Shown here in pieces: positions 18,721 to 43,990 of a stretch of 64,000 bases of DNA (position 1 is its first letter; every line of letters starts with the position of its first letter). The notes below the pieces were generated by a model, which saw only the letters and a list, made by a program, of their open reading frames with translations, searched no databases and had not been told where the DNA came from. The position numbers and the translations under genes are program-made. Where the stretch lies: sequence record OR142618.1, one strand, 5' to 3'.

Positions 18721-19425
18721 ATGTCCGTACATATCACTCGTCAACGTACCGACAAACAGCACGTCCTGGCACTGGCAATCAACGGCGTGGTCATCGGCCA
18801 GACCATGGCTACTTACACCACCCCGAGCAAGCGCACCTGGTCGGCGACCGCCGAAGTCGAACTGGCAGACGGCACTGTCGTTCAGTTCGAACAGAAGGAA
18901 GTGTTCAGCGCGATCCGCATCACCCGCGAAATCGAGCAGGCGCTCGACGGCAAGGAACTGGCGGCCAAGTACACCCCGGAACCGAAAGTTCCCGGGCAGA
19001 AGGGTCCGAAACCGCTCACCGACGAAAGCCGGCTCAGCAACGCGATCGCGATCGTCAAAGCGGCCATCACCCACACCGGCTTCGACGAAGCTACCCTGGT
19101 GTTCGACGGGGTCGACAAGGCCAACTTCGAGCAGAACAGCACCTCCGTCGGCAACAAGCTGCGTCGCCTGGGCTTCGTCTTCGAACTCGGCGCCGGCAAG
19201 GCGAACAGCGGCAAGGGCTTCCTGATCAACCGCAAAGCGCAGGCCGAGGCAGAAGCTGCCGAACGCAAGGCCAAGCGCGACGCCGAGAAGAAGGAACGCG
19301 AAGAAAAAGCGGCGGCTGCCAAGCGCGAAGCTGACGAACGCAAGGCCAAGCGTGAAGCCGAACGCGCCGAAAAGGTCGCTGAAAAGAACGCAGCGATCGC
19401 CGGGGCAGCGCAGGAAAGCAAGTAA
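18721..19425 (+). CDS. paralog A of a three-member GC-rich family; K/E/A-rich C-terminal tail
   Basis: Shared domain NGVVIGQ...TPSKRTWSA...EQKEVFSAIRITR; GAGG RBS; terminator follows. Confidence 0.9.
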   Translation: MSVHITRQRTDKQHVLALAINGVVIGQTMATYTTPSKRTWSATAEVELADGTVVQFEQKEVFSAIRITREIEQALDGKELAAKYTPEPKVPGQKGPKPLTDESRLSNAIAIVKAAITHTGFDEATLVFDGVDKANFEQNSTSVGNKLRRLGFVFELGAGKANSGKGFLINRKAQAEAEAAERKAKRDAEKKEREEKAAAAKREADERKAKREAERAEKVAEKNAAIAGAAQESK

Positions 19426-19440
19426 TTGCCCAACTGCGCC

Positions 19441-19469
19441 AGAAGGGGAGCAATAGCTCCCCTTTCTTC
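19441..19469 (+). terminator. intrinsic terminator
   Basis: gaaggggagc-aata-gctcccctttc. Confidence 0.8.
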
Positions 19470-19494
19470 ATGACCACACAATCTATATACTACT

Positions 19495-19731
19495 ATGTCT
19501 TTAACTATATTTTCTATATCAGCTAATTTGTATACAATAACTTGGTATTCTGCGCAACTGACACAATGGTGTTATATAGACATAATAACACGCGACGCTA
19601 ATATTTTTATAACCTATCCATTTTATAATAACATATTTGTATCTAAAATTAGTTCTAATACAATAATTGAAGAAAAAATTGAAGAAAAATATGAACACTA
19701 TATTAGAGATATGTCGTGGAATAAGAAATGA
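19495..19731 (+). CDS. hypothetical protein
   Basis: 78-aa AT-rich ORF. Confidence 0.5.
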   Translation: MSLTIFSISANLYTITWYSAQLTQWCYIDIITRDANIFITYPFYNNIFVSKISSNTIIEEKIEEKYEHYIRDMSWNKK

Positions 19732-20391
19732 CTATATAACAGTCAATAATTTTACATATGACTACTATCTAGAGGTAAACACACCTGCGTTTTCTTTAAT
19801 GATAATTATTCCGACAGTTCCTATATTAGACAATATTTGCATTACTTTTATAAAAAAGTATTAATATGAATATATTCTTTATATCAAACAGTCTATCTAA
19901 TATACTATATCATAAAGCTTATGATATACATATGATAGATATTAAGATTAATAATTCTACTTCTATTTGGCTTACATATTCTTTCAATATTACTAAGGTA
20001 TCATTTAAATATATTATCTGATTCGTTTTCTTATTGTATGAGTTGCAATTGCAAATTACTCTTATTTGTAATTGCATATAAACAATCAGTTGCTATTAAA
20101 AGTATTTGCTGTTAATATATTATATAACAGTGCAATTGATATTTTAAAATACAGTGTGCAATACATCTTACATGTATTAAAATTTGTGTGTTACTTATTT
20201 TGCATTAATGATTAATATACCTCTCCTACAGTACAAAACTCATACTATAAACAATTTGTTCGGGCGATCGTTCTCGAAAAGTATACAAGTGAGAGATAGC
20301 AATCTAATTATACTTGTTAGTTTCTATATAGAAGGTTCTAAATATAGAAAATTTGTATATAACAAAGAATACCTCAAAGAGATTTCAGCAT

Positions 20392-20658
20392 ATGCAAACA
20401 ACAATCGTTAATGCCCTAAAATCTATTAATGTAAAGTATTCGGATATATTTTACACAAATGGTAATTTGTGTAATACCGTTACAATACGAAATATTCGTA
20501 AAAATGGTAAATTAGATTCGGCAGAACAAATTAATGTAGAATCAGTTGTGAGCAATTATTTGATTCAAAAAGATTTAAATTTGCCCTTTTCTATTCAGTG
20601 GGCAAATAATGATTGTTGCGAAGAGTATACTACACTTATTCTCTTCTTCAGAAAATAG
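20392..20658 (+). CDS. hypothetical protein
   Basis: ORF MQTTIVN... (ATG within track ORF 20353). Confidence 0.55.
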   Translation: MQTTIVNALKSINVKYSDIFYTNGNLCNTVTIRNIRKNGKLDSAEQINVESVVSNYLIQKDLNLPFSIQWANNDCCEEYTTLILFFRK

Positions 20659-20916
20659 TGTATGATTAGATTAAAAAGATATGTTCAATTGCATAGCATA
20701 TACAGATTGTCTTACTATGCGCACGGCATACATTTTAGCAAAACAAAGAATATAATGCTTTACGTAGGAAACGCAGGTCCCGTACCCGTAACATGACAGT
20801 ATATAGCGTTAAAATGTGCATTTTTTGCACGATTTTGCGGGGTATGCGTTACAAGCAATACACACATACTGCTTTTAAAATGCATGCTTACATGCGCTTT
20901 GTAGGGGGTTTAAAAC

Positions 20917-21129
20917 ATGCTTAAATTAGTTACCACTGTGCTATACAACGTCTGTGTAGCTTCGTTGATAATGATTGTGTTTGTATGCGGTATAAATTTA
21001 GTAATGTATCTCGATAACATTACTGACAATAATCCAGTTGTTATCTTTATTTCCCTTCTATCAGTTATTTATGGTGTTGCGTGGTTAAGCTATATGTTTG
21101 TTACTATCCAATTTCAGTCCAAGAAATAA
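20917..21129 (+). CDS. small membrane protein (2 predicted TM segments)
   Basis: Two long hydrophobic stretches; GGGGG RBS-like sequence. Confidence 0.65.
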   Translation: MLKLVTTVLYNVCVASLIMIVFVCGINLVMYLDNITDNNPVVIFISLLSVIYGVAWLSYMFVTIQFQSKK

Positions 21130-21144
21130 AAGTATTGGTAACAT

Positions 21145-21486
21145 ATGATAGATAAAAATGGAAATACAGAAGACTTTGATTTTGATAATGCATGCACTAT
21201 AACTGATCTGTCTGTTCCTCTTCAGCAAAAAATACAATCATATAAATTAAATAAAATATTGGTTATGGTTGCAATCCTTAAATATTCGAATATAAAACAA
21301 GAAATAGGATGTTTCGCTATCATATGGGATCATATAATAAAAATAACGGTTGAAGTAAAATGCAATCCGTATGCAGAAACACACATACTCATGCATGCGC
21401 ATGTATTTTCTAATTCCGATTCATGTACTCATAGTGTATTGCTGAATTACAGAAACAAATATTTACCCACTAATTATTATAATTAA
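21145..21486 (+). CDS. hypothetical protein
   Basis: 113-aa ORF in operon. Confidence 0.65.
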   Translation: MIDKNGNTEDFDFDNACTITDLSVPLQQKIQSYKLNKILVMVAILKYSNIKQEIGCFAIIWDHIIKITVEVKCNPYAETHILMHAHVFSNSDSCTHSVLLNYRNKYLPTNYYN

Positions 21487-21487
21487 T

Positions 21488-21895
21488 ATGGAAGATATTC
21501 TTAAAATTGCTAAACTAATCGGGTACGTAAACATACATGCAAATAAACATCTTCAGTATGATTTTAACAAAGATATGGAACATGTATGTGTTAGTGCCAA
21601 GACTAGGACAAGTATGAACGGAATAAAATACCTTTATGTAGTAATGAATATATATTATATATATTGCCAGCAAGAAAGTGTTGCCGTTATATTAAACGAA
21701 GTAAACATCGATGAAATGCCTATATTAGATAATCTTTATGCTAAACTTAATGATTTAACTACACATAAATCTGTTATAAAATTTAAATATACAGAAATAA
21801 CACAAGAACAAATAGATTTGTTGAATAATAGTGAAAGATATATAGTATATTTTGACTCTTATTTAGAAGAATACGGAATAGCTTCGTTTTATTAA
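21488..21895 (+). CDS. hypothetical protein
   Basis: 135-aa ORF in operon. Confidence 0.7.
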   Translation: MEDILKIAKLIGYVNIHANKHLQYDFNKDMEHVCVSAKTRTSMNGIKYLYVVMNIYYIYCQQESVAVILNEVNIDEMPILDNLYAKLNDLTTHKSVIKFKYTEITQEQIDLLNNSERYIVYFDSYLEEYGIASFY

Positions 21896-21908
21896 TTTTG
21901 AGGAATAT

Positions 21909-22106
21909 ATGAAAAAACAAACAGGATTTACAGATTGGCCATTGATTAGTTTGGGTACAATTATTATCTTGTGTGTATGGGTATTAATTCTACAATACAC
22001 AGAAATAAATGTACTAGAAGAAAAATGTAACAAAGTAGGTGGTATTTTTAATAACACGGTTTGCATACGGTCAGATGCAGTTATTAACTTAGATAAGGTA
22101 AAATAA
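21909..22106 (+). CDS. small membrane-anchored protein
   Basis: GAGG RBS; one TM segment followed by a C-x3-GG-x6-C motif. Confidence 0.7.
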   Translation: MKKQTGFTDWPLISLGTIIILCVWVLILQYTEINVLEEKCNKVGGIFNNTVCIRSDAVINLDKVK

Positions 22107-22107
22107 A

Positions 22108-22365
22108 ATGCCAAAACTTTACGTTAACAAAAAACATGATACCATTTATCTTCAATTAGATCATTTCTCATCCGATACTGTATCTCCAATTAATTACAAC
22201 GAAGATGTAGAATATGTAATTGATAGGATCCGTAGTCTGCACAAATCCGGATTCGGGTTTAGTCATATGAATACTCTACAAGAATATCTTACGGCAAGAA
22301 CAGAACAGGATAAGAAGTTTAAGCTTAAAGTAGAAGACTTTGAAGTAGTATCATTTAAGATTTAA
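22108..22365 (+). CDS. hypothetical protein
   Basis: 85-aa ORF in operon. Confidence 0.7.
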   Translation: MPKLYVNKKHDTIYLQLDHFSSDTVSPINYNEDVEYVIDRIRSLHKSGFGFSHMNTLQEYLTARTEQDKKFKLKVEDFEVVSFKI

Positions 22366-22386
22366 AATTATACATAATCAAAGAAT

Positions 22387-22415
22387 TTGACATTTGATGT
22401 GTATACTAGTATAAT
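22387..22415 (+). promoter_or_regulatory. perfect-consensus sigma70 promoter
   Basis: TTGACA-17-TATAAT. Confidence 0.9.
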
Positions 22416-22421
22416 TTGCTC

Positions 22422-22952
22422 ATGCTGTCGTAACAGCTACTTTGTTCCATTCACAAGCAGCTCTGTTCCATTACTGGATATTGGTAGTAGAAACTATCCC
22501 CATCGTGCCCACAGTATTGTTCTGTTAGAGACAGATTAAAACATACAAAAGTGGGTTATTTAAATTATGATTTTGGGTGCTGAAGTATAGTCGTTAGACA
22601 AGGATATGTCTAATGTTGCAAAGGACTATGCGAAACGTATTATATATCTTATCCGATATTAGATATGTAATAAAAGGATGAAGCTCTGGTAGAAACAGAG
22701 TGTAATTCTTGCTTGTATATCACACGGATATACAAAAGAATATACACACCAACTTCAGCATTGATGTAAATTTTCTAGCATAGGTATATAACATCGATGT
22801 TCCGGGATTCATTGGAAACAATGAGAGAATGATGTAATCTGAGGAAAAAGGTCCCCGCCTCGTCCATATTACGAAATGGTTTTGAGTACTTATGCCCTCG
22901 TCCTATATTGGCATATGGGTTTTATATTTCTCCCGTAATTACGGGAGAATAT
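22422..22952 (+). ncRNA. putative ~530-nt structured RNA (ncRNA-3)
   Basis: No ORF after a consensus promoter; long-range helix tgctgaagt/acttcagca, GAAA tetraloop, ends at a 22-bp palindrome. Confidence 0.7.
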
Positions 22953-23281
22953 AATTTCCTGAACCTACTTGGAAATGGACGCTTCTGCTGTGCTTCGCAC
23001 ATCATCTAAGGGCCTTCACCCTTACCGCTAAGAGCAAGAGCAAAAGCAATATAATTACAAATAAGAATTAATTATTGTTTAGTTTTATCGTAATGAATAT
23101 GAAGATAAAAACTAAACAATAATTCACATGTAGCGTTAGCTACTGTGAATATCTACTATAATATTAACCATATATGTATACAAGGGCATATTATGGCTGT
23201 TACTTGTTGACAGTTTGATATATGTGTTACACTGCATAAATCAAATGTACATTACAATGTTTTGATTATTAGGAACATACT

Positions 23282-23869: not shown

Positions 23870-23872
23870 AGA

Positions 23873-24421: not shown

Positions 24422-24430
24422 TGCATATTT

Positions 24431-24460
24431 AGAAAGGGAATTATAATTCCCTTTCTTTTT
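24431..24460 (+). terminator. intrinsic terminator
   Basis: agaaagggaat-tata-attccctttct followed by T-tract. Confidence 0.8.
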
Positions 24461-24579
24461 GGATCTATATTAGCAAATACTAATTAATCTTATTTGCACA
24501 AATTTAATCCTATTGTGTTTTCTATTTTGAAGTGCTACATTACATGTAGTTGCATAAAACTATATACAGGAGAAATGAT

Positions 24580-25131
24580 ATGTGCTATGCATGGGATATC
24601 AAAGACGGGGATGATATCGAAGTCGAAGCAGTTATGGATGAACGAAGCTATGAGTGGACCGGCAAGTTACGTATCATCCAGTATCGGATCCAAGATCGGT
24701 GGCGTGTTATTATCAATATAGTAGAATTTTGGAGTCATTCTACTGAAAGTATACTGAAAGAACTTGGTATAGAAGCTAAACACATTACTAAAGGATATGC
24801 CACACTTAGTATGGTTCGTTTCCCGGAGGTTGATTACCTATTTAGTGTAACACCCGATAATGCAGATTATGTAACTGTTAACCGCAGTGCAGTAGATATT
24901 TCTGACAGTTGGTTTGTTGCAAAAAACATAAAAGCAGTTATGTATCATTTGGGATCTGAAATCCAGATCACTCCGTGGTTTGTGCGTAAAGATAGTAGCG
25001 AGACAAATTTCAATTGTATTGATCGATTAGTAGCTCTAGTAAAAGAGAATACTGACGTTGACACGTATCAGTACATCAAGGTAGGTTGTCCTGAGGACAA
25101 GTCATTTTACTTTGCGTGGATAGACAAATAA
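24580..25131 (+). CDS. hypothetical protein
   Basis: AGGAG RBS 7 nt before ATG 24580. Confidence 0.8.
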   Translation: MCYAWDIKDGDDIEVEAVMDERSYEWTGKLRIIQYRIQDRWRVIINIVEFWSHSTESILKELGIEAKHITKGYATLSMVRFPEVDYLFSVTPDNADYVTVNRSAVDISDSWFVAKNIKAVMYHLGSEIQITPWFVRKDSSETNFNCIDRLVALVKENTDVDTYQYIKVGCPEDKSFYFAWIDK

Positions 25132-25220
25132 TTCGTTTGCTATACGTACTAATACGTTGTATACTGTTAGTACGTATAGCAAAAGTAACACATAACGTTT
25201 TGATTTAATGGAGCCCTAAC

Positions 25221-25514
25221 ATGAAAAAAGAATTTGAATCGCGGATTCGGACTCCCTCTCCGGCGCCAGCGCCCCGGACGCCCGATGTGTGCAGCGAGTG
25301 CAATGACACCGGGAAAGTCTATGACGAAAGCGGCGCCGGTCCGTGGAGTTGCTACGCCTGTACCGGTAACCCGGAGGTGATCGGCTACGCAAACGGCGAT
25401 GAGTTGGACAACATGCTGGATGACCGCACTGCTGTTCTCTCTCCAAGGAAGACCAGTTTTCACACCGTGCCAGTGTATCGACTGATCCACACCCAAAACA
25501 AAAGTTTTCAATAA
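25221..25514 (+). CDS. hypothetical protein with CxxC...CxxC Zn-ribbon, GC-rich
   Basis: CSECNDTG...CYACTG; GGAG RBS. Confidence 0.75.
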   Translation: MKKEFESRIRTPSPAPAPRTPDVCSECNDTGKVYDESGAGPWSCYACTGNPEVIGYANGDELDNMLDDRTAVLSPRKTSFHTVPVYRLIHTQNKSFQ

Positions 25515-25562
25515 AATCGATATGGAATTGGCCCTCCGGCAAGCCGGAATAGAGGTGAAGCC

Positions 25563-25772
25563 ATGAAGACATTTTTGAAGATGCTCGCATATTGCGTGCT
25601 TGGGACATCCATTGGCATTGCCATCAGCCAATGGTTCATCTTCGTCCTAGAGATGAGGCTTGGCGCCGTGCTCTGGTACATCGTTGGCCTTGGTCCTGTG
25701 CTGCTTGTGTTTTGCATTTTGGGCAGCTTCCTTCAATGGCTGATTCATAAGAACTTGGAGAAAAAGCAATGA
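25563..25772 (+). CDS. small membrane protein, GC-rich
   Basis: GAGGT RBS; two hydrophobic segments. Confidence 0.7.
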   Translation: MKTFLKMLAYCVLGTSIGIAISQWFIFVLEMRLGAVLWYIVGLGPVLLVFCILGSFLQWLIHKNLEKKQ

Positions 25773-25843
25773 CCGACCACGCAGAGCTGCGGAGGCTGGC
25801 TAAAGAAGTGATCCGAATTGAACGAAATGAGGATGCAGCATGA
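25769..25843 (+). pseudogene. 24-aa remnant resembling the N-terminus of Ead/Ea22-like prophage proteins
   Basis: MTDHAELRRLAKEVIRIERNEDAA*; ATGA-coupled on both sides. Confidence 0.45.
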
Positions 25844-26376
25844 GCATTGACTGGAGCAAGGCACCAGAGGGTGCGACGCACTACCAACCGGAATCACGTG
25901 GCTTCCATGCGGCATGGTTCCGACTTCAAGGGGGGAAGGCTCGCGAAATGTGGGTCGTGATACCCGGCGGTGCGCTTGAGCACATCATCGATCCGACTGT
26001 CTTCGACGAGAGCATGCAGAACCTGATCGCCCGCCCCGTAGAACCTGCCACCTGGAACGGCCAGGGCCTGCCGCCGGTTGGCCTGATGGTGGAGTGGAAG
26101 GCAGGCCTTGATCACGACTGGCAGCGCGTAACCGTGCTTGCCTACGCCAATGGCGACGCGTGGTTTCAGCCTGAGGATGGCCCGTCTTTCATCGTCGGCA
26201 ACCCGGCAAACTTCAGGCGTATCCGCACCCCCGAGCAGTTGGTCGCCGAGGAGCGGGAAAAGGCGATTAATCAGATGATTTCTGATGCTGGATACGTAGA
26301 TCCGAAGATTGGCACATTTGTGGCTATGCGCAATCTCTACGACGCCGGCTACCGGCGTCGGGAGGAAGGGAAATGA
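25840..26376 (+). CDS. Pseudomonas temperate-phage-type hypothetical protein
   Basis: MSIDWSKAPEGATHY ... WNGQGLPPVG ... RTPEQLVAEEREKAI ... LYDAGYR, a typical prophage-family pattern. Confidence 0.8.
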   Translation: MSIDWSKAPEGATHYQPESRGFHAAWFRLQGGKAREMWVVIPGGALEHIIDPTVFDESMQNLIARPVEPATWNGQGLPPVGLMVEWKAGLDHDWQRVTVLAYANGDAWFQPEDGPSFIVGNPANFRRIRTPEQLVAEEREKAINQMISDAGYVDPKIGTFVAMRNLYDAGYRRREEGK

Positions 26377-26639
26377 GCAGACTGACAGCTGAGCAAGCCC
26401 GTGACATAGCGCGAGCGAAAGACGATGTCGATACTATCCTCAACGACATCGCCAAAACAGCCGCAGAAGGAAAGTACGTGTACACTACCCGCGCCTATGG
26501 GTTCGGCACAGGCGGCGGACGGCGCAGCGACGCGATCCTCAAAGTGTTGCGTAGCCTCGGCTACGACTGTGCTGTGCATGCTGAGGGACGCCAGTCTGTT
26601 GACCTGTGGCTTGAAGTGAAATGGGGAGACAAGCCATGA
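26373..26639 (+). CDS. hypothetical protein, GC-rich
   Basis: 88 aa, ATGA-coupled, GGAAGG RBS. Confidence 0.75.
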   Translation: MSRLTAEQARDIARAKDDVDTILNDIAKTAAEGKYVYTTRAYGFGTGGGRRSDAILKVLRSLGYDCAVHAEGRQSVDLWLEVKWGDKP

Positions 26640-27082
26640 CTAACAACCCCGGAGATTCAAAAATGATCGTAGAAAACGCCAAGCAAGCCGCCGAAGACTT
26701 CAAAACTTCCATGGCTAAGATTTTTCCGAATTACATCGCCAGGGCGTCGGTTTCCGATAACCTTGGTCCGGCGATGACAATTTCGTTTGCGAATGTCGGT
26801 TGCGCTTCCGAAGCCCCTAACAGCATTCTGATGAATGCGAGCGGTTACATGCGCTTTATGATGCATTTGTGTGACAATTGCGGGAATGTATTGCCAGAAG
26901 GTTCGCCGGTAGAAATTGAGCTACTAATGTGGTCTATCCCCTATCGTTCGGAAGTGATCAAGTTCCGCAAGATCAAGGGCAAGACACCAGCCGAAGCTAT
27001 GCAAAAGCTAGTCAAGTGGTTTGAAAAAACGCTGAAGCTATCCGGGGTCTGTAATGGTCTCCACGTAGGACACGCAGAATGA
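26636..27082 (+). CDS. hypothetical protein
   Basis: ATGA-coupled start MTNNPGDSK; GGAG RBS. Confidence 0.7.
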   Translation: MTNNPGDSKMIVENAKQAAEDFKTSMAKIFPNYIARASVSDNLGPAMTISFANVGCASEAPNSILMNASGYMRFMMHLCDNCGNVLPEGSPVEIELLMWSIPYRSEVIKFRKIKGKTPAEAMQKLVKWFEKTLKLSGVCNGLHVGHAE

Positions 27083-27480
27083 ACATTGTGTTGGACAAAT
27101 TGCTGTTTGGCGGTTTCATCGACCAGCACCGCAATGAACTTGCCCAGCAACAACTGAATCGGTTGTTTGCCAAGTACGGTGAGCCGAAGATTGGTATCAC
27201 ACGGGCATGCTTTCTATCTAAGCATTACGTCCTGAAGTTCCCGATTAATGACAGGGGTGAGCGGTGCAACGATTGGGAAGGTAGCTGTTCCGGCAGCTAT
27301 TTGGCACGCGGACGCTGGCTAGAAATCGGAGGCTTCATTTGCGTCATGCAAGAGCGTTTGGTTGAAGTGGATTGGAAGAACAACACCCATGCAAACTTTC
27401 CTGATTGGGTAGGCAGCATAGATTGTGGTCAAGTCGGCTACGATAAACATGGCGTTCTGAAAGCGTATGACTTCGGGTGA
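27079..27480 (+). CDS. minimal protein-kinase-like fold protein (putative)
   Basis: GITRACF, VLKFP, NDWE, VMQERL, IDCGQVG and terminal YDFG in canonical kinase order. Confidence 0.55.
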   Translation: MNIVLDKLLFGGFIDQHRNELAQQQLNRLFAKYGEPKIGITRACFLSKHYVLKFPINDRGERCNDWEGSCSGSYLARGRWLEIGGFICVMQERLVEVDWKNNTHANFPDWVGSIDCGQVGYDKHGVLKAYDFG

Positions 27481-27729
27481 AGCATGACCCCGGTCGACCC
27501 TGACAGTGGCATTAATAGCATCAGTAAAACCACAAGAAATTCTCATAGCTGAAATGGAACAGTTAAGAACAAAGAACAGTGAATACAAAGAAAGAGGTTT
27601 TTAGCGGCTAAATTGTTGCGCTTTTCTTCGATATTTAGTATATTTCTATTGACGTGCTAGGGCATTTTGTACTAATATAGCACTTGAAGGCTAGGTATTC
27701 CGCCAAAGTCTACTACCGGAGAACTTCCG

Positions 27730-28017
27730 ATGATTGTTAAAGTCGCTGCTTTCCGTAACGCTGTTGACCACCTTTTCCGCGTGGTCAATGTCGACTATCA
27801 CGCTTGCGTGCGCGCAGACGAGCTGCGCAACTGGCAAAGCATTGCAAGTCGTGTTCTAGCCGAAGTCGATGCCTTAGAATGCAAGCGCGCTAGACAGGAC
27901 GACCTCGATCAGCAGCGCCGCAGCATCGAAACAGCCCGCGAACGCATGGACCAGGCAGCGCAACGCATCGCCCAACTCGAAACCGTTATCCGTCCCGCTG
28001 TAGGGCGCATGCAATGA
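27730..28017 (+). CDS. hypothetical protein with C-terminal coiled coil, GC-rich
   Basis: TTGACG promoter at 27649; GGAG RBS. Confidence 0.8.
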   Translation: MIVKVAAFRNAVDHLFRVVNVDYHACVRADELRNWQSIASRVLAEVDALECKRARQDDLDQQRRSIETARERMDQAAQRIAQLETVIRPAVGRMQ

Positions 28018-28168
28018 GCGCCCTTCGCTTCGCCGCAATCCGGAATTGTCAAAACCAGCATGCACCAGCGCCATCAAAACTGACGATGAACATCCGCAAT
28101 GCAGATATGGAAAGAGACAAGAAATGAAATTCTAAATTACTTAAACAAACACAATAGGAGCAGAATAC

Positions 28169-30180: not shown

Positions 30181-30181
30181 A

Positions 30182-35070: not shown

Positions 35071-35162
35071 TAAAATACCTGTTGACGCATATAGCAATAT
35101 GCGCAATAATATGCACGAAAGCAAGAACAGATCCAAATAACCTTTTTATAAGAGATTATATT

Positions 35163-35810
35163 ATGTCTAAGTATCTTTCTTTTAGCGTAAACGTAGACAT
35201 GGACAACACTGGTCTGTTGAAATGGTTGCGTCCTACCACCGGTCGGTTGGATGGATTCGAAGAGAGTGTTAAAAACTTCGTTTCTTCTTTCCGCTCAGTC
35301 GAGTCGAGCCCTACGGTGTTTCAAGTTTACGATGACGATAACCAGCCGTTGCAAGTAAGCAACATGAGCTGCTTCTTCCGATACTTTCCGGTGTATGGTA
35401 TGTGCCTTGCACCGGGTTCGATGGTCCGGGAACAATATCGTCGGGAGATCCTCGACTACACTACTGACGAGTTCTGTTCATTCAGTAACTACTTCAGTGA
35501 CGGCAAGGCCATCCGCGGCGGGGCAGTCTTGTGGTGGGATGTAGAGAAAGACTTGGTATGGTCTGTTAGTCCCGAATTGATTCGCCTCGTATATGCCCGC
35601 TTGCAAAGCGATCTGGACATCGGGTGGTATCATCTCGGGCAAGAAGTTATGGCTGTAGTTCCCCTTCGTTCGTATCCCAACGATGTTGCCCGATGGAAAT
35701 ATGTACAAGGTAATATCTGCGGCATCGACGATCAAGTGAGCATTCGCAGCAATGTCGACGGTCGAGTCACCCGGCTTAATTGGGAATACATCGTGACCCA
35801 AGGGGGATAA
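35163..35810 (+). CDS. hypothetical protein, intermediate GC
   Basis: ATG at 35163 after a GAGA RBS-like site. Confidence 0.8.
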   Translation: MSKYLSFSVNVDMDNTGLLKWLRPTTGRLDGFEESVKNFVSSFRSVESSPTVFQVYDDDNQPLQVSNMSCFFRYFPVYGMCLAPGSMVREQYRREILDYTTDEFCSFSNYFSDGKAIRGGAVLWWDVEKDLVWSVSPELIRLVYARLQSDLDIGWYHLGQEVMAVVPLRSYPNDVARWKYVQGNICGIDDQVSIRSNVDGRVTRLNWEYIVTQGG

Positions 35811-35811
35811 T

Positions 35812-36039
35812 ATGGGCGGTCTTGCTAATATAGTTGCATGCATAGCTTCTATTGTTGCAATTGTTACTGGAAATATCTGGTATTTTATCGCACTGTTGCT
35901 ATGCACAGCATTTATGTCGCCCGAACGAAAAGGATCATTAATTGATGTATTTTCGGTCATTGTCGGGATTGGTGCTATATTTAACGGAGACATTGCATGG
36001 GGCATAGTGTTCATAGCATTAGTGATAATAGTTAAATAA
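35812..36039 (+). CDS. small multi-TM membrane protein
   Basis: Highly hydrophobic; terminator at 36041-36067. Confidence 0.7.
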   Translation: MGGLANIVACIASIVAIVTGNIWYFIALLLCTAFMSPERKGSLIDVFSVIVGIGAIFNGDIAWGIVFIALVIIVK

Positions 36040-36081
36040 AAAGGAAGGGGTTTAACCCCTTCCTTTCTATGCAGGTGTTAA

Positions 36082-36818: not shown

Positions 36819-36829
36819 TTTAGTTTCTT

Positions 36830-36906
36830 TTTCATTATCAATATCTTTTTCTTTTTCAATATCTTTTTCTTTATCTTTTTCTTTATCTTTTTCTTTATCT
36901 TTTATC
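36830..36906. repeat. atctttttcttt tandem tract
   Basis: About 4 copies of (t)atctttttcttt. Confidence 0.8.
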
Positions 36907-37029
36907 ATTGCAAATACAAATAATAATTATTCTTATTTGCATTTAGTGATGTAAATAATTCTTATTTGTATTTGCGATTAATTCTTATTTGCTACAATAG
37001 ATAGAATAAGAATAATTCACATTTGCAAT

Positions 37030-37139
37030 GCCGCTAAAAGCGCTGTAAGCGCTGTATATTGCGTAGTAGTGCTAAGCAATGCGTTAGTACAGCTACGCGC
37101 ACAAACGCTGTTATGCGCGCTTGTAGCGCGTTTTAGGGC
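37030..37139 (+). other. ~110-nt imperfect long hairpin
   Basis: ctaaaa/ttttag, gcgctgtaagcgc/gcgcttgtagcgc, gcgtag/ctacgc and gtgctaa/ttagtac; the mismatches are G-T on the + strand. Confidence 0.7.
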
Positions 37140-37374
37140 CCATGCGCATGCGTATACCTGTAGCTTTACATAGTAAAATGCAGAAAAGACGTCGTCTATT
37201 AACGTGCCTGTCTTAATAGAAATATACAATTGTACAATACCTGCGAAATCCTACACACTACAGACATGCAAACAAGCAATGTGCTTGCAAGCATAAAAGT
37301 TTTTAAAAAGTAGTAGACACAGTGTAGCATCCCTAGTAAGCTACACACATAAACAACACAACGGAGTACAAGCT

Positions 37375-37845
37375 ATGTCTAATGTAAGCATCCCTGCTGT
37401 AACTGTAGAGAACATCGGCACCCTGCGCATCGTGCGCACCGCTAACAAGGAGGTCGGAAGTGTGCTCGACCTAAAAGTTAACGGGGTAGTAGTAGGGCAA
37501 GCTTTCCCGCTCTACAGCACAAAAACCCAGCGTAGCTGGAACGCGAGCATGCACGCTACCGTTAACGGCGTAGAGGTGCAGTTTGCACAGGAAGGCGTGT
37601 TCAGTGCAATCCGCATTGCACGGGCGTTCGAGGATGCAGTAAAGCACGCCGTTAGCAACGGCGAACAAGGGCAACCCCTCCCCGCGCCGGCGGCGGCAGA
37701 AGCGCAAGCAGAAGCGCAAGCAGAAGCCCCGGCAGCGCAGACCGAGGATGCGCCGGAGACCCCGGCAGCCGAAGCTAAGCCCGCCCGCAAAGGCGGCAGC
37801 AAAGGCGGCAGCAAAGGCGGCAGCAAAGGCGGCAGCAAAAAGTAA
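37375..37845 (+). CDS. paralog B of three-member family; A/E/P linker and (KGGS)4 tail
   Basis: NGVVVGQ...STKTQRSWNA...AQEGVFSAIRIARA; TAGACA-17-TAAGCT promoter at 37314; GGAG RBS. Confidence 0.9.
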   Translation: MSNVSIPAVTVENIGTLRIVRTANKEVGSVLDLKVNGVVVGQAFPLYSTKTQRSWNASMHATVNGVEVQFAQEGVFSAIRIARAFEDAVKHAVSNGEQGQPLPAPAAAEAQAEAQAEAPAAQTEDAPETPAAEAKPARKGGSKGGSKGGSKGGSKK

Positions 37846-37999
37846 GCGCTGCTAACACAGGAAAGGGGCAACTGCCCCTTTCCTTTTATGTCCTAGTTGT
37901 AAACGCAAATTAATCTTATTTGCATTTGCACAAGTCATTCTCCGGTTGCATTACTGCGGTAAGATGTTAGTATATATGTAGCTATACGGAGTAATTGCT

Positions 38000-38230
38000 A
38001 TGAAGCGCAAGTACCTAAAGGCACAGTTCGAGCATGTCAGTGCCGGGCGAGTTGCAAAAGAACTCGACGAGAAGTTCAATTTCGTTGTAGGCGATAATGT
38101 ACACTACTGGGCCATCTTCGAAACTAATGTCAAACCCGAAGTTCTACAAAAGGCAATTCATGACATGAACGGTGGTGCTTACTGCCATGCATATTCTATT
38201 CCGTATGAGGATGTAGAGGAGTATCTCTAA
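38000..38230 (+). CDS. hypothetical protein
   Basis: GGAG RBS, immediately after joint promoter. Confidence 0.8.
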   Translation: MKRKYLKAQFEHVSAGRVAKELDEKFNFVVGDNVHYWAIFETNVKPEVLQKAIHDMNGGAYCHAYSIPYEDVEEYL

Positions 38231-38444
38231 TGCTCTACTATCGCGATGTTTATGCAGGTGTTTGCTGTTAAACTTGTATAGCCGGCACCAGGTCGCATAT
38301 AACACGCCTAGCCCCATGCAAACTGCGGACATGATCCATTCACGCCTGTAGCGTATGTTCGAAGAATTCGGTTGCAAGCCCGACGGTTGCTCTGCTAGCA
38401 TGTACGAGGATAAGACGCACATTACACTAGCCTGGAGCAAGTAA

Positions 38445-38735
38445 ATGGATATGTCGATTGTGAACAAGCGCTTCGAGAAAGAACTAGCGCTGTTTAATGT
38501 CGAAGTTCTCAGTAAGCGCACAGTGAATCATATAACGAAACCGAACATCGAAGTTTCGTTCAAACTAAAGGGTCATACTACTGAAGAAGAGATGACCACT
38601 GTTACTCAGCTCGCACGTCCCATTATGGAGTATGTAAGCGGACGTAGGGTGGTCTGGGCACATACCGGTCTTTGGCGCTCAATGAAAGACGACCTCGAAG
38701 TAGCAGTGCTGACAATGAAGTTATCCAAACAATAA
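38445..38735 (+). CDS. hypothetical protein
   Basis: GGAG RBS; followed by joint terminator. Confidence 0.75.
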   Translation: MDMSIVNKRFEKELALFNVEVLSKRTVNHITKPNIEVSFKLKGHTTEEEMTTVTQLARPIMEYVSGRRVVWAHTGLWRSMKDDLEVAVLTMKLSKQ

Positions 38736-38890
38736 GAGAAAGGGGCACTTGCCCCTTTCCTTTTATGTCCTAGTTGTAAATGCAAATTACTCTTATTTGC
38801 ATTTGCACAAGTCAATCTCCTGTTGCATTACTGCGGTAAGATGTTAGTATGTGTTTAGCAGTAACACATAACTAGCAGGAGCAACAGACA

Positions 38891-39151
38891 ATGGCAAAGG
38901 TTTACCAAGCAAGTGACAGCACCGGTGAGTGGCAGTGTGTTGTTATCCTCCCCGACGTTGACTCGGCTCTTCTGTACGCTACCAAGCGCTGCGCGCAAAT
39001 GGGCAAGGTGGAAGTTGTCGGTCCGTGGGCTCCTGTAATGCCACAGCATTACGCGAACATGCCGAAAGGTGACGGTGCGGAAGTGCAGTGGCGCCTCATC
39101 CCGCCGGGTTGCGGTGTAGCCTGGTACGTCACTTCGGTTAACGACAAGTAA
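38891..39151 (+). CDS. hypothetical protein, GC-rich
   Basis: GCAGGAG RBS after joint promoter. Confidence 0.8.
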   Translation: MAKVYQASDSTGEWQCVVILPDVDSALLYATKRCAQMGKVEVVGPWAPVMPQHYANMPKGDGAEVQWRLIPPGCGVAWYVTSVNDK

Positions 39152-39161
39152 GGAGACAGAC

Positions 39162-39464
39162 ATGAACCTCGTTACTCTGTGGATCAACGGGCGTGCTGTG
39201 ACTGCCCGCAAGGTTGTCAGTAAACACACTGTCCGCAATCCGAACAGTCCGATCGATATCGAGACTATCGACGTTGTTCGACTGCGTCTGCCCCGTGGTG
39301 TTCGTGCTAGCAGTTGGGCACTCCGTAAGGCAGTGTACCAACTCATGGAGCAAAGCTGTAGCTGCTCGAGAGACTGTTGTGGACACTGGTTCGGCGGCGC
39401 ACGCAAGATCTACATTAAAGGCAGAGACGTCAGTGTAGTTGCCGGGTACCAGCGCAATTACTAA
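39162..39464 (+). CDS. hypothetical protein with CSCSRDCCGHW motif, GC-rich
   Basis: AAGGAG RBS; Cys cluster. Confidence 0.8.
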   Translation: MNLVTLWINGRAVTARKVVSKHTVRNPNSPIDIETIDVVRLRLPRGVRASSWALRKAVYQLMEQSCSCSRDCCGHWFGGARKIYIKGRDVSVVAGYQRNY

Positions 39465-39719
39465 AGGAAAGGGGGCAACTGCCCCTTTCCTTTTATGTCC
39501 TAGTTGTAAATGCAAATTATTCTTATTTGCAATGATAATATCCCCGCCACGCAAATAAGAACTAATCTTAGAACAAATATTCACTTGATTTTTCTCCCAA
39601 TATAGTGTATGTGTATACCGGATAAGATTAAGTCTTGTTTGCTTGTTACATTTTATATGTTGCAATGCTAAGGCAATGATACTATTATATGTACAGTAAT
39701 ATAACCCAGGGGATATAAC

Positions 39720-40025
39720 ATGTCAGCAGAATTGAAGCGGTTGTTAGAGATTTTTCCAACCTTTAAATCATTCATTTATGCTGAAGGGGCATATGGCATT
39801 GATGTTTGGAAGGCTACGGGTAGTGTTACTTTGGAACAGGTATTCAATGCTGTTAATGCAGGTAATGCAGAATGGCAATGTAAAGGTGATCCAACATGCA
39901 GCCTGGAACAAAACAGCATGTATATTTTCATTACTATTCAGGAACCAGACTACACAGGAATGGTTGATATTGATGTTTGTGTAAAGATTACTAACGGTAA
40001 TGAAGTAAGTTATCAAATAGCATAA
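39720..40025 (+). CDS. hypothetical protein
   Basis: GGGG RBS; terminator at 40029-40059. Confidence 0.75.
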   Translation: MSAELKRLLEIFPTFKSFIYAEGAYGIDVWKATGSVTLEQVFNAVNAGNAEWQCKGDPTCSLEQNSMYIFITIQEPDYTGMVDIDVCVKITNGNEVSYQIA

Positions 40026-40244
40026 TAAAGGAAAGGGGGAATTAATCCCCTTTCCTTTTATATATAATATACTTATAAATAAGAATTAATTTTATTTAAT
40101 TAAAATTAGAATAATTCTTATTTGCACGATCCCGCACTTATAACACAAGTATATTACAAAAGCAAGAATAAAATTAACTTGACACACATATGTAGAATAT
40201 AGCACAATGTGTTTATAAATTATATTACTACAGGAGTGTTAACC

Positions 40245-40616
40245 ATGTTCAAATGCAAATTGTTTGTAGTAGATCCTGTTTATAACAACCTTTGCTACAC
40301 TCAACAAATATGGCTCGAAAGTGACATAAATGTGTGTAGTCAAATAAAGCGTATTATTTCTGACGCAGAATTGGCATGCGCAAACAGGATAGTAAATAAT
40401 CCTCATAGTCCGCTGTGCGTTAAATCGGCAGCATTAAAAATGGTTATGGACGGGCGCATTGACATCGAACTCAAAGATGTCGATAGTTACGTTGATCAAT
40501 ATAAAGACATTCTTCCTAGCACAAATATTTTGGGTGTTTTTAAACCGACGTTTTTATCTAACTGGAAAGAAGAGTGTGAACTTTATTTCCTCACTTGTGT
40601 TGAAAAAGACAATTAA
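40245..40616 (+). CDS. hypothetical protein
   Basis: AGGAG RBS before ATG 40245. Confidence 0.75.
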   Translation: MFKCKLFVVDPVYNNLCYTQQIWLESDINVCSQIKRIISDAELACANRIVNNPHSPLCVKSAALKMVMDGRIDIELKDVDSYVDQYKDILPSTNILGVFKPTFLSNWKEECELYFLTCVEKDN

Positions 40617-40627
40617 TATAATATAAT

Positions 40628-40915
40628 ATGGAATATGATTTAAAAAATATTGTTTCGAAGACTATCTTATCTAATAAAATTAAGATAGTCTCTTTACGTA
40701 CTGTAGTAAAAACTCAGTATAAAAGAGTAGACTTCCATTATAAGATAGAATGTGAAAATAGTTCTACAAAACGTAATTTGGCACTTGCCCGTATATACAA
40801 ACCATTAGAACACACATTAGGTTCAAAACTTGTTTATGTAGATGTTGTGCCTATCAAGTTTAAGAAAGATGAAATGCCATCTACTATTCTATCGGTAAGT
40901 GTAATGACTAGTTGA
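40628..40915 (+). CDS. hypothetical protein
   Basis: 95-aa ORF in operon. Confidence 0.65.
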   Translation: MEYDLKNIVSKTILSNKIKIVSLRTVVKTQYKRVDFHYKIECENSSTKRNLALARIYKPLEHTLGSKLVYVDVVPIKFKKDEMPSTILSVSVMTS

Positions 40916-41065
40916 TATTTGGATTTGATAATTGGAAATATAATAGTAATTCTTATTTGCAATTATAATAAATTCTTGTTTACTTTTAAAATAAAAGCAA
41001 ATTCTAGTTGCATAGCTAGAGGCACTGTGCTAGTATATTAAAAAATAAAGACAGGAGTGTTATTC

Positions 41066-41248
41066 ATGCAAACCAAAGCAACCGAGTTGGCAGTAGGCGA
41101 TGTTGTTTTCTACAATGGCATGAAAATGACTATCCAGAAAATTTCTAAAGGTCGGTGTGCAATAGATATTACACTAGTAAATACTTTGGCTAAACTCACA
41201 TCTTATGTGACAGTCGACTACGACGAAGAATTTGAAGAAGTATTATAA
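41066..41248 (+). CDS. small beta-barrel-like hypothetical protein
   Basis: AGGAG RBS; KATELAVGDVV motif. Confidence 0.7.
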   Translation: MQTKATELAVGDVVFYNGMKMTIQKISKGRCAIDITLVNTLAKLTSYVTVDYDEEFEEVL

Positions 41249-41265
41249 TGCAGAAATTATAGTCA

Positions 41266-41294
41266 TAAGAAAAGGGGCATTGCCCCTTTTCTTA
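41266..41294. terminator. bidirectional intrinsic terminator
   Basis: taagaaaaggggc-att-gccccttttctta between convergent genes. Confidence 0.85.
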
Positions 41295-41531
41295 TAGTCC
41301 CAACAAATGCTTGCCACTTTTGACTTGCATCATACGTACTTTCTTTTTGCGCATTTGCGTTCTTACGTTCAGGCTGTTGGGACCTTTGAAGCTATACAGT
41401 ATTTCAGTAGTCCCGTCTTCATAGTTGCGTACCACATTTGCAACAATTTGACTGCCTTCCTGGAACGCTTCGATAAACACGCAGTAATTGAAATTTTCCT
41501 TGTTAGCGTTATGTGCGCGTAGTTGCATCAT
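41292..41531 (-). CDS. hypothetical protein (only minus-strand cassette in the early region)
   Basis: Minus-strand GCAGGAG RBS and TTGCAT...TATACT promoter; ends at the bidirectional terminator. Confidence 0.7.
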   Translation of the reverse strand: MMQLRAHNANKENFNYCVFIEAFQEGSQIVANVVRNYEDGTTEILYSFKGPNSLNVRTQMRKKKVRMMQVKSGKHLLGL

Positions 41532-41884
41532 TTTCTGTTACTCCTGCGTTGTTTTGCTTTGTTATGTGTAGTATACGCTATGTGTGTACTAATGCAAGAA
41601 TTTTCTTCCATTTTCTTTCAAATAAAATGTTATTAGCATCTATTCTGTTATAACATTTTCTATGACTTCGTGTTTTGCAAATAAGAATTATTCGCATTTG
41701 CATTCCTACCTATCTGCCTAAATTTTAGGCAGCCTGGGTGATTGTCTCCCCCGCCCTATTACTGGTCTCTGTATAAAGATAATAGCATATTTGCATCTGC
41801 ATGCAAGCATTTTTTGTAGAATTTTCCTCTTGACATTCCTTGCTGTAGGCTACATTATGCACACACAAAGCAGGAGATACCATT

Positions 41885-42265
41885 ATGGCACTCATAGCAT
41901 TAGTCGCAACTGCATATGACAAAGAAGGCGATAAGTTCGACTATGTTCGATATCTTAAAGCTCATATCAATTTTGTGTCTGCTCAAGATCAACTGAAAGA
42001 ATGGATCAAAAACAAAATTGATGCAAGTATAGCAGAAGTTAAAATCGGATTACGTGCAGAAATCGAAGTATTGGCCTATTTGGGAAACTATATAAGCCAT
42101 AGTCAACGGATTATTAGTCCCGCCGGGATCATCATGTACATTGTTCTTGATGAGAAGTATGTTAACGAACTTCACGGTCAAATTTCTAATGCAATTGATT
42201 GTGAAGAAAAGAAACATGTAATAAAGAAAGAAGAAAACGTCACTTATATTGATTTTAAAAAATAA
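41885..42265 (+). CDS. hypothetical protein
   Basis: TTGACA promoter at 41830; GCAGGAG RBS. Confidence 0.8.
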   Translation: MALIALVATAYDKEGDKFDYVRYLKAHINFVSAQDQLKEWIKNKIDASIAEVKIGLRAEIEVLAYLGNYISHSQRIISPAGIIMYIVLDEKYVNELHGQISNAIDCEEKKHVIKKEENVTYIDFKK

Positions 42266-42298
42266 CTTGCGTTAGCTGTAATGTATATGTATTATGTA

Positions 42299-42458
42299 CT
42301 CAAGTTTGCAGCAAGACGTATTAATTTGTTTTGCTGTTAGTTGTAACTCCTGCTACCAAGTATGTGTTGAGCTAATGCTCCTGACTTGGTTCTTGGTACA
42401 CTGGTTTGGGTGTACCGTTCTTGAGCTGCAAAGGGCTTGCCCGGAGCAGCTTTTTTTT
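42299..42458 (+). ncRNA. putative ~160-nt small RNA with two CUCCU motifs (ncRNA-5)
   Basis: TTGCGT-17-TATTAT upstream; stems ctcaag/cttgag, ccaagt/acttgg and ggtacac/gtgtacc; terminator gctgc...gcagc followed by T8. Confidence 0.55.
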
Positions 42459-42538
42459 GACCAATATTATTCATTTGACAAAAAATAATAATTAAAAATA
42501 TAATAGCTTAGTGTATAACTTCCCGTATTAGGCTAATT

Positions 42539-42910
42539 ATGAAATTTGTTATTGCTGCTATTGCATTGTCTTTGTCCACACTAGTTTCTGCAGAATCTAT
42601 TTCTGAAGTTAAGATAACTAAAGAAACATGTCTTACACTTCTAGAATTATCTAAGATTCATGTTGATATGGTAGTAAATGAACACATGAATGCAATACAA
42701 ATTGCATCTCAAATGGATATTGTATCTAATTCATATAAGAATAATAATAGTAAATGGCTTGCATTCTTGCAAGCTCAAGCAAATATTTCAAAATTAATTG
42801 ATAATGTATATGAGTTTTCATCTACTGAAGAAAGAAAGATTATTCCTCTAGCCATATTTAACGGTTGTATGGAAAGAGTTGGTAATACTTTAGAAATATA
42901 TAAGAAATAA
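42539..42910 (+). CDS. secreted/periplasmic hypothetical protein
   Basis: Signal peptide MKFVIAAIALSLSTLVSA; TTGACA-18-TATAAT upstream. Confidence 0.8.
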   Translation: MKFVIAAIALSLSTLVSAESISEVKITKETCLTLLELSKIHVDMVVNEHMNAIQIASQMDIVSNSYKNNNSKWLAFLQAQANISKLIDNVYEFSSTEERKIIPLAIFNGCMERVGNTLEIYKK

Positions 42911-42911
42911 T

Positions 42912-43220
42912 ATGTATAATGTATATGTAGTCCACGGAATAGTCAACACAGGCGTTGAGACTAATATTTGTGATATAGAACGTTACATTACAAGTAACGA
43001 CTTCCATGCTGTAGCAAAGTTTCTTAATTTTAAAGAACATATGGTACCAAACACACGATTAATTGTTTCTGGATTAAATACTAAAAAGAACATATTAGAA
43101 TTAGAATTAAATTTATCGAAAAAAGAATATGTAGTATCAGGTTTTAGAGTTACATCACCTGATATAAATGAATGTATTGAATATTACCTGTGTAGAAGGA
43201 TATTTAAGTTACATGATTGA
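42912..43220 (+). CDS. hypothetical protein
   Basis: 102-aa ORF in operon. Confidence 0.6.
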   Translation: MYNVYVVHGIVNTGVETNICDIERYITSNDFHAVAKFLNFKEHMVPNTRLIVSGLNTKKNILELELNLSKKEYVVSGFRVTSPDINECIEYYLCRRIFKLHD

Positions 43221-43552
43221 ATTTATATTAAAATCCCTTTTATTAACTTCAGTTGTCAGTGTTGGCATACTACTGATATTCATTATTATTTCATTATTAA
43301 TGTTGGGCTTAGGACCGATAGTTCCATTCCTTATTTAATTTTAATTATTTGCAAGCAAATGCAAATGCGAATAATTCTTATTATCCAGCAGGCTACTGTA
43401 CCTAATCTTCGTTAGATAAAATCTATTAGAATCTACAAAGTCCATTAAAACGTTCAATTGTACATGGTGGCCAGATCTGCATATACTACACACATGAAGC
43501 AAGCAAACAGCGCTTCATAAACAAACCCAAATACAGCTAGGAGTTCCAAATC

Positions 43553-43990
43553 ATGACCAAAGCAACCGTTACCGTCGAGCAATCCGCAATCAAACTGGTC
43601 CGCCGCAACCTGGAAGGGCACCGGCAGGCCCTGCTGCTGAACGGCGTCGAAGTAGGCAGCAGCGAAGCGTTCTACAAGACCAAAACCCAGCGCACCTGGT
43701 CGGCGAAGATCGACGCCAACATCAACGGCAAGGACATCGTCCTCGAACAGAAAGGCGTGTTCAGTGCGATCCGGATCGCCCGGGCGATGGAACAAGCAAT
43801 CCTGTTCATCCTGACCGACGGCAAAGAAGGCGCCGAGATGCCGGCCAGCACGCTGAGCAAGGAAGAGCAAGCCCACAACCTGGTCAAGGCAGTAGTTCAG
43901 GTTGCCGGCCACGCAGTCCAGTCCGGCGACGCTGCCCCGGCGAAGAAAGGCAGCTCGAAGAAGCGCAAAGAAGCCCAGCCGGAAGCATAA
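43553..43990 (+). CDS. paralog C of three-member family; basic tail
   Basis: NGVEVGS...KTKTQRTWSA...EQKGVFSAIRIARA; AGGAG RBS; terminator at 44004-44029. Confidence 0.9.
   Translation: MTKATVTVEQSAIKLVRRNLEGHRQALLLNGVEVGSSEAFYKTKTQRTWSAKIDANINGKDIVLEQKGVFSAIRIARAMEQAILFILTDGKEGAEMPASTLSKEEQAHNLVKAVVQVAGHAVQSGDAAPAKKGSSKKRKEAQPEA

Follow-up and report, generated by a model that had tools for sequence, protein, structure and literature searches.

What are three small GC-rich genes doing in the early region of an AT-rich jumbo phage genome? The question arises from a stretch of 64,000 nucleotides of sequence record OR142618.1 (the window), in which positions 18000-20000 correspond to positions 204000-206000 of Pseudomonas phage Callisto (100% identity, megablast) and match 10 PA5oct-like jumbo phages (Arenbergviridae, Wroclawvirus) at 94-99%. 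Phages of this group have been proposed as model and therapy phages, and for more than 80% of their genes no function has been assigned. We found that the three genes, here called paralogs A, B and C (Table 1), are autonomous promoter-gene-terminator cassettes in the early terminal-repeat region of PA5oct-like jumbo phages and are recoded into the optimal codons of the host; by sequence comparison, their products prove to be members of an undescribed, phage-restricted protein family. The reading that we favour, with a probability of about 35%, is that they are abundant early nucleic-acid-associated proteins.

Three paralogs with one N-terminal domain

An earlier reading of the bare sequence (the original prediction) had described three dispersed paralogs with a common N-terminal domain. 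All three open reading frames (ORFs) are present, and their products match each other significantly in pairwise BLASTP (E = 1e-16 for A and C, 4e-16 for A and B, 3e-26 for B and C). The shared domain (43-47% identity; 24 columns of the alignment are invariant) is about 75-90 amino acids (aa) long instead of the ~65 aa first proposed, and a profile search of the 286,854-bp Callisto record found exactly three copies of it, in A, B and C. Each copy carries the family signature, a 'NG-x-x-VG ... Y-x-T-x-(T/S)-(Q/K)-R-x-W' hairpin and then the helix start 'FSA(I/V)R(I/L)'. A, B and C are the orthologs of PA5oct EST35_0038, EST35_0086 and EST35_0098, respectively, and lie at the same relative positions, all within the 39-kb terminal repeat of the PA5oct record; the orthologs in PA5oct, MIJ3, Paride and other phages are 93-99% identical. 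In the PA5oct record, EST35_0038 is labelled 'structural protein' with a note of tandem mass spectrometry after electrospray ionization (ESI-MS/MS), and the other two are labelled 'hypothetical protein'. Nowhere do the records of these phages join the three as one family, and their sole functional hint is the mass-spectrometry detection of gp038.

The GC-rich stretches at A, B and C are open in several reading frames, and the frames were compared among Callisto, PA5oct, Paride and Cassandra. In the chosen frame of A, 24 variable codons differ only synonymously and 3 change the amino acid, with 25 of the 27 variable sites at codon position 3; the ratios of synonymous-only to changing codons in the other two plus-strand frames are 0:26 and 1:25. 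In the N-domain of B, and likewise in that of C, 4 codons vary only synonymously and 1 alters the amino acid. All insertions and deletions among the four phages are in frame and confined to linkers (the number of AEAQ repeats, the number of KGGS repeats and a 7-8-residue insert in C). The codon variation, the in-frame indels, the distant protein homologs described below and the detection of gp038 together settle the reading frame, and the comparison identifies A, B and C as real genes under strong purifying selection. Other records call these stretches differently (Table 1): in Paride, A is placed in a different plus-strand frame and C on the minus strand, and in Cassandra all three paralogs are called on the minus strand. 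It appears that gene callers tuned to an AT-rich genome mis-call GC-rich islands.

The tails of the three proteins had been described as different. Their sequences are as described and that of A is distinct, but those of B and C proved to be variants of one conserved plan. In B, the N-domain (aa 1-93) is followed by an acidic Pro/Ala/Glu linker (aa 94-136, 43 residues, net charge -7) and a (KGGS)4KK tip (aa 137-156, net +7); in C, the N-domain (aa 1-88) is followed by a low-confidence helix (aa 103-118) and a Lys-rich tip (aa 132-145). BLASTP aligns B and C colinearly to the C-terminus, pairing '..PARKGGSK' with '..PAKKGSSK'. The order of domain, acidic Pro/Ala/Glu-rich linker and Lys/Gly/Ser tip of 14-20 residues (+3 to +7) is common to B, C and the family members P0010-P0016. 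A and its relative P0017 have, instead of this plan, a conserved basic linker ('..P-K-(V/I)-P-G-Q-K-G..'), an alpha/beta domain and a 60-residue Glu/Lys/Arg helix; in A, the N-domain spans aa 1-76, the linker 77-100, the alpha/beta middle domain 101-172 and the long Glu/Lys/Arg-rich helix 173-234. The helix of C aligns as a homolog of the first helix of the A middle domain. The GRP core of AT-hooks is present in none of the three tails.

An AlphaFold model of C, built on a 22-sequence alignment, had a mean predicted local distance difference test score (pLDDT) of 83.7, with values above 94 at residues 10-100 and low confidence in the rest. It contains six antiparallel strands (a beta-meander) and then a helix (residues 72-87) covering one face, and the conserved, exposed Y-K-T-x-T-Q-R-T-W segment forms the hairpin between strands 32-41 and 47-57. 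The model thus portrays the N-domain as a sheet-plus-helix platform without identifiable relative. Foldseek against the PDB gave a best E of 0.065 (ThermoDBP-RP2; criterion E <1e-3), a BFVD fold search returned only the family's own orthologs, and the other fold searches peaked at Z 5.3-5.6 with a type IV secretion system (T4SS) immunity protein, actin capping protein (best, 5.6) and ThermoDBP-RP2, where Z <8, by the guidance of the tool, may be only a common arrangement. ThermoDBP-RP2, which binds single-stranded DNA, is the sole nucleic-acid binder that two independent fold searches both ranked near the top (Z 5.2-5.5); double-stranded RNA-binding domains (dsRBDs) and levivirus coat proteins reached Z ~4. 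The similarities to these three are at noise level and may be taken as leads, not as evidence. Like the N-domain, ThermoDBP-RP2, levivirus coat protein, dsRBD and actin capping protein have an antiparallel sheet with a helix on one face, but they differ from it in strand order and length, share no sequence similarity with it and match at Z 3.5-5.6 and E >=0.065.

The model of A (3-sequence alignment) was poor, with a pLDDT of 57.7 overall and of 84-91 in the helix 171-233. The tail is predicted to be a long uninterrupted helix rich in alternating Glu and Lys/Arg, of the ER/K-type single helix or coiled-coil kind. The middle domain, for which a winged-helix-like fold had been proposed, is modelled at pLDDT 50-64 as helix 101-119, strand 125-127, helices 133-138 and 142-149 and strands 152-156 and 166-170, the third helix being basic. 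This order of elements fits the proposal at low confidence, but no helix-turn-helix (HTH) or winged HTH family in Pfam or NCBIfam was matched; a word-based protein search with this domain found only the PA5oct ortholog, and a fold search with the A model gave long-helix matches only. Additionally, A, B and C matched no Pfam or NCBIfam profile of HU/IHF, H-NS/MvaT, Fis or OB-fold single-stranded DNA-binding protein (SSB), and no match to T4-type internal proteins was found in PHROGs.

Distribution and exchange of the domain

A profile search of 1.84 billion representative sequences obtained 25 matches at E <=1e-3, and 10 representatives had E values of 1e-10 to 1e-42. Giant Ig/PKD/Cna_B repeat proteins (P0018, P0028 and P0029) were rejected as relatives, since their scores were sums of weak hairpin matches. 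The remaining matches are unnamed metagenome proteins of 75-244 aa from uncultured phage contigs, often with several paralogs per phage, and no bacterial homolog was found among the representatives. A word-based search with C alone recovered close orthologs only; with the 22-sequence profile it added the distant members P0021 and P0030 and a subgroup of ~107 aa (P0027 and P0034-P0041), all recovered members being unnamed, with no annotated or characterised relative among them. When a distant member was compared with cultured phages by tblastn, only PA5oct-like phages were hit, and a scan of IMG/VR loci found no relative. Pfam, PHROGs and NCBIfam gave no family for A, B, C and 22 family members, a sequence profile search of the PDB gave nothing, and the ESM Atlas gave no usable match with whole B or with the A middle domain. 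The novelty claimed for the domain is borne out by the profile and structure searches (no match in Pfam, PHROG, NCBIfam, PDB sequences or PDB folds), and in the searches made none of the three proteins matched a known enzymatic or virion family.

Four metagenome contigs (L007, L009, L016 and L017) are syntenic with the Callisto early region. P0017, of A type, adjoins a homolog of gp035, P0011 occupies the B position and P0010 the C position; P0010 and P0011 come from the same sample, so that phage has at least two paralogs, and L009 holds two family members. In the tree, A and P0017 together with the B/C type form one clade (96/95), and P0012, P0014, P0015 and P0016 form a separate subclade (99/99). 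This topology indicates that the A type and the B/C type split before these phages diverged.

At the B position of L009, P0015 has neighbours with 72-83% identity to Callisto proteins, but its own N-domain is only 36% identical to that of B and falls in the 99/99 subclade. The last 14 residues of P0015 (PETPAAEAKPARKG) are exactly those of B, with 4 synonymous differences in 42 nt, and the DNA identity extends further, across terminator, CTTATTTGC box and the promoter that follows. The identical tail was at first taken as proof of a selected linear motif; this was downgraded, because the DNA identity across the joint makes recombination an equal explanation. Strong selection on the tip would account for this, and so would a swap of N-domains by recombination close to the 3' joint; either way, the N-domain is an exchangeable module.

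Tails also vary among the distant members. P0021 ends in a GRP-containing, AT-hook-like tip, and three short members (P0019, P0020 and P0025) have no basic tip and carry another C-terminal motif, 'P-M-S-D-L-V..' or 'A-M-A-D-L-V..', which suggests a third kind of tail module. The genes of the 107-aa subgroup (positions 10001-10324 of L010, 10001-10324 of L014 and 3706-4029 of L015) always lie just upstream of MoxR-like AAA, DUF2201 (VWA-type) and RtcB genes, with wide intergenic gaps, in uncultured phage contigs of 42-127 kb.

Codon usage and transcription

A, B and C, with a GC of 0.60-0.62, form islands of 57-62% GC in a background of 26-30%. The GC content at third codon positions (GC3) is 0.77 in A, 0.63 in B and 0.77 in C, compared with 0.17-0.35 in AT-rich neighbours. 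The three genes prefer CTG (fraction 0.67), CGC (0.66), GGC (0.78), CCG (0.72), ACC (0.81), AGC (0.66), ATC (0.96) and TAC (1.0), and the neighbour genes favour TTA, AGA, GGT/GGA, CCT, ACT and ATA/ATT. The major codons of Pseudomonas aeruginosa are those favoured by A, B and C. In this way, GC3 and the codon table agree with the GC-rich, host-like codons noted in the original prediction, the host preference being general knowledge. Furthermore, family members rank high in GC3 among the genes of metagenome contigs (first of 27 in L007, first and second of 14 in L009, first of 12 in L016 and second of 6 in L017), and in two distant contigs they rank 6 of 39 and 12 of 39, above the median. Because the GC3 excess recurs in relatives and a bacterial homolog is absent from the 1.84 billion representatives, the islands point to selection rather than to recent host capture. 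We read them as probable marks of selection for rapid, high translation via host tRNAs, which fits better than capture, and the GC-rich messages may possibly be more stable too. More islands of this kind lie at 25151-28150, 35176-35875, 38000-39525 and 45776-47725 (GC 0.47-0.55, GC3 0.49-0.69); their small genes have no Pfam family, and these islands together with the non-coding RNAs (ncRNAs) may mark the most strongly expressed early units of the phage.

The three genes belong to the terminal-repeat block (gp34-gp105) of PA5oct, which is highly transcribed early (PMC7318152). Each gene had been predicted to have its own promoter(s) and terminator, and putative sigma-70-like sites and hairpins were located at A, B and C. 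Upstream of A are two sites of the consensus form TTGAC-N17-TAnAnT; B and C have a common TTGTACA-N16/17-TAyACw element followed by a homologous leader, which indicates that the duplication took in the promoter. Hairpins of 10-11 bp with a tetraloop lie within ~25 nt after each stop (z -3.7 to -6.4 over the three genes).

Transcription of A was followed in contigs assembled from four RNA-seq runs (X1-X4) of one 2020 study over positions 16500-20500. The contigs cover A from ~18590 to 19447, with the repeat region 18108-18509 practically empty and depth rising in the bin 18510-18643. Past 19447, depth is <=1/190 of that in the bin 19314-19447 in X2 and X4, where A is deep, and drops ~3- to 6-fold in X1 and X3. 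The contigs thus show A as a discrete transcription unit, which extends from beyond its promoters to its terminator. Its depth relative to the adjoining ncRNA (17840-18107) was ~0.4%, 0.5%, 6% and 60% across the four runs, and this ~100-fold variation indicates that A is regulated independently of its neighbours. A loose contig end in run X3 continues into the C sequence, so C is present in the RNA too. Within the same region, a leader with the gene 17153-17560 (16634-17571) and the equivalent of PA5oct ncRNA001 (17706-18107) showed very high, run-independent contig depth.

The 9-mer CTTATTTGC occurs in 18 copies in the window (1 expected). Copies adjoin all three genes, as the original prediction had noted, but the box punctuates the whole early region and is unspecific to A, B and C; the role of motif binder or ncRNA partner proposed there gained no support, as no link to the box or the ncRNAs was found except neighbourhood. 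Among the metagenome contigs, exact copies number 8 in L009 and 5 in L017, and none was found in L007 and L008 (A-type relative) or in L016. A near-identical joint of terminator, CTTATTTGC box and promoter follows two unrelated Callisto genes (37846-37990 and 38737-38870), and it is ~85-90% conserved in L009 (3569-3720). A GC-rich (~50%), ORF-poor stretch (37017-37200), perhaps a small RNA of its own or else a long leader, separates the B promoter from a promoter-like site linked to CTTATTTGC (36989-37016); Rfam gave no family in the window, this stretch included. The AT-rich gene after C (44147-44635) has a sub-threshold match to PF03013, pyrimidine dimer DNA glycosylase (E 3.7e-4), and is labelled 'DNA binding protein' in Paride.

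Table 1. Positions in the window of the three paralogs and of the elements around them, with the evidence for each.
Feature	Position	Strand	Evidence or remark
Paralog A	18721..19425	+	234 aa; ORF, alignment, RNA contigs, cross-phage codon comparison
Paralog B	37375..37845	+	156 aa; ORF, alignment
Paralog C	43553..43990	+	145 aa; ORF, alignment, AlphaFold
A promoter 1	18514-18542	+	TTGACT-17-TAAAGT, sigma-70-like, predicted from sequence
A promoter 2	18609-18637	+	TTGACG-17-TACACT, sigma-70-like, predicted from sequence
B promoter-like element	37230..37257	+	TTGTAC-16-TACACA; homologous to that of C; sequence reading only
C promoter-like element	43459..43487	+	TGTACA-17-TATACT; sequence
A terminator hairpin	19442..19465	+	-18.7 kcal/mol, z -3.9; RNA depth drop
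B terminator hairpin	37859..37884	+	-23.0 kcal/mol; first part of terminator-box-promoter joint
C terminator hairpin	44004..44029	+	-20.6 kcal/mol, z -6.4
CTTATTTGC box, four copies	18222..18339	.	upstream of A
CTTATTTGC box, other copies	36932, 36984, 37915; 44053		around B (first three); after C (last)
Alternative record calls	18609-19334; 18882-19481, 37512-37871, 43454-43912	+ (first); - (others)	OR805295.1, OR805292.1

What the proteins may do

The favoured reading, that A, B and C are early nucleic-acid-associated proteins, can be put as follows. The proteins would be made in large amounts right after infection and would associate with nucleic acid, for which the AT-rich phage DNA is the most plausible candidate. 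Specific contact would be made by the N-domain through its open sheet and hairpin, and the tethered lysine-rich tip of B and C, or the alpha/beta domain and long charged helix of A, would give non-specific polyanion contacts or spacing. A would also be virion-borne, so that some protein would be present at DNA entry. From the original prediction, the novel domain, the early block, the discrete transcript of A and the host-like codons stand; the binding to nucleic acid or host machinery is putative.

Known systems offer partial likenesses to this design. Like bacterial SSB, the proteins have a folded domain, a flexible low-complexity linker and a conserved short charged C-terminal tip, but they have no OB fold, their linker is acidic and their tip is basic where that of SSB is acidic; the resemblance is one of design only, and membership of the SSB family was excluded by the Pfam and fold searches. 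With histone H1-like tails, the C-terminus of mycobacterial HU/Hlp and AT-hooks they share short Lys/Gly/Ser/Pro-rich basic segments on small abundant proteins, but they differ in having no GRP core, tips of 14-20 residues and no HU, H-NS or MvaT domain.

Several points weigh against nucleic-acid association. The N-domains are neutral or mildly basic (net charge -1, +2 and +5), the short basic tips carry +3 to +7, several relatives are acidic as whole proteins and some distant members are tail-less. The structural matches all lie below the noise level of the tool, and none is significant. Depth in assembled contigs is a weak measure of expression, and the runs are coded, so 'early' rests on the block-level statement of the published study. 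The ortholog of A has been detected in virions, which could be carry-over of an abundant protein.

A bolder form of the favoured reading, which we regard as a long shot, is that the family is a phage 'chromatin', in which sheet domain and lysine tips would coat the AT-rich, deazaguanine-modified genome from entry and shield it from the AT-seeking silencers MvaT/MvaU and from nucleases. In this picture the virion would deliver A, and within minutes B and C would be translated from GC-rich messages that are codon-optimised and RNase-resistant.

Alternatively, the N-domain may serve as a protein-binding specificity module that targets a host factor or a defence protein and has diversified as genes were duplicated and modules swapped, with the tails as conserved effector or anchor pieces in host takeover or anti-defence. 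The same early block holds PA5oct gp52, a proven inhibitor (anti-END1) of the END nucleases that target hypermodified DNA, and modified G was deduced for PA5oct DNA from deazaguanine genes (bioRxiv 10.1101/2025.03.31.646159). The equivalent of gp52 in Callisto lies at ~24550-25131, as placed by coordinate offset only. This explanation gains weight from gp52 in the block and from the swapped N-domain of P0015, which keeps the tail of B among well-conserved neighbours; several paralogs per phage and autonomous, moron-like cassettes also agree with it. On the other hand, neither PADLOC-independent anti-defence knowledge nor the known inhibitor folds gave a match. Among PA5oct-like phages the N-domain stays invariant (0-1 changes), unlike an ongoing arms race at that scale, and the conserved tail in L009 is possibly just part of a recombining 3' joint. 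We hold this explanation as a tentative but real possibility.

Packaging with the DNA, as internal head or ejected proteins whose basic segments would neutralise its charge, is a rather unlikely role for A and perhaps also for B and C. The tails are basic, EST35_0038 is annotated as a structural protein by ESI-MS/MS and two further genes of the block were also detected in PA5oct virions. The flag weakens a purely intracellular reading of A; a match to a known enzymatic or virion family with no nucleic-acid binding was what the original prediction had named as contrary to it, and the flag touches on this, although no known virion family is involved. The orthologs of B and C carry no such flag, the early block that holds the genes is remote from the structural modules, and PHROGs and BFVD virion families show no similarity except to the family's own orthologs. 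Moreover, the 93 proteins of the PA5oct virion list include virion-unrelated enzymes (PMC7318152).

It is improbable that one of the paralogs, the likeliest being A, which has a putative winged-helix-like domain, regulates the early region by binding the near-palindromic CTTATTTGC box between terminators and promoters. Copies flank A, B and C, the exact 9-mer co-occurs with family members in the distant L009 and L017, and the modelled order helix-strand-helix-helix-strand-strand of the middle domain, with its basic third helix, would suit such a binder; but the boxes flank many unrelated cassettes, three contigs with relatives (L007, L008 and L016) have no exact copy, and the low pLDDT of the middle domain, the missing HTH sequence match and a fold search dominated by the long helix all argue against it.

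Recent horizontal capture of GC-rich host or phage genes with no special role in expression would agree with a GC of 0.60 in a background of 0.27-0.33 and with the Pbunavirus homolog of gp52 in the same block, but it is highly improbable, as no homolog was found in the bacterial genomes or GC-rich cultured phages searched, distant relatives of conserved synteny already show distinct A, B and C types, and the GC3 excess recurs there.

Whichever function applies, A, B and C are among the few genes with host-optimal codons and private promoters and terminators, which marks proteins that the phage needs fast and in quantity. They add a new domain without structural precedent, within a conserved design of domain, acidic tether and basic tip. 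Their islands show that standard gene callers mis-annotate such regions, and the GC-island pattern is a simple way to pick out high-priority early genes in AT-rich phages of GC-rich hosts.

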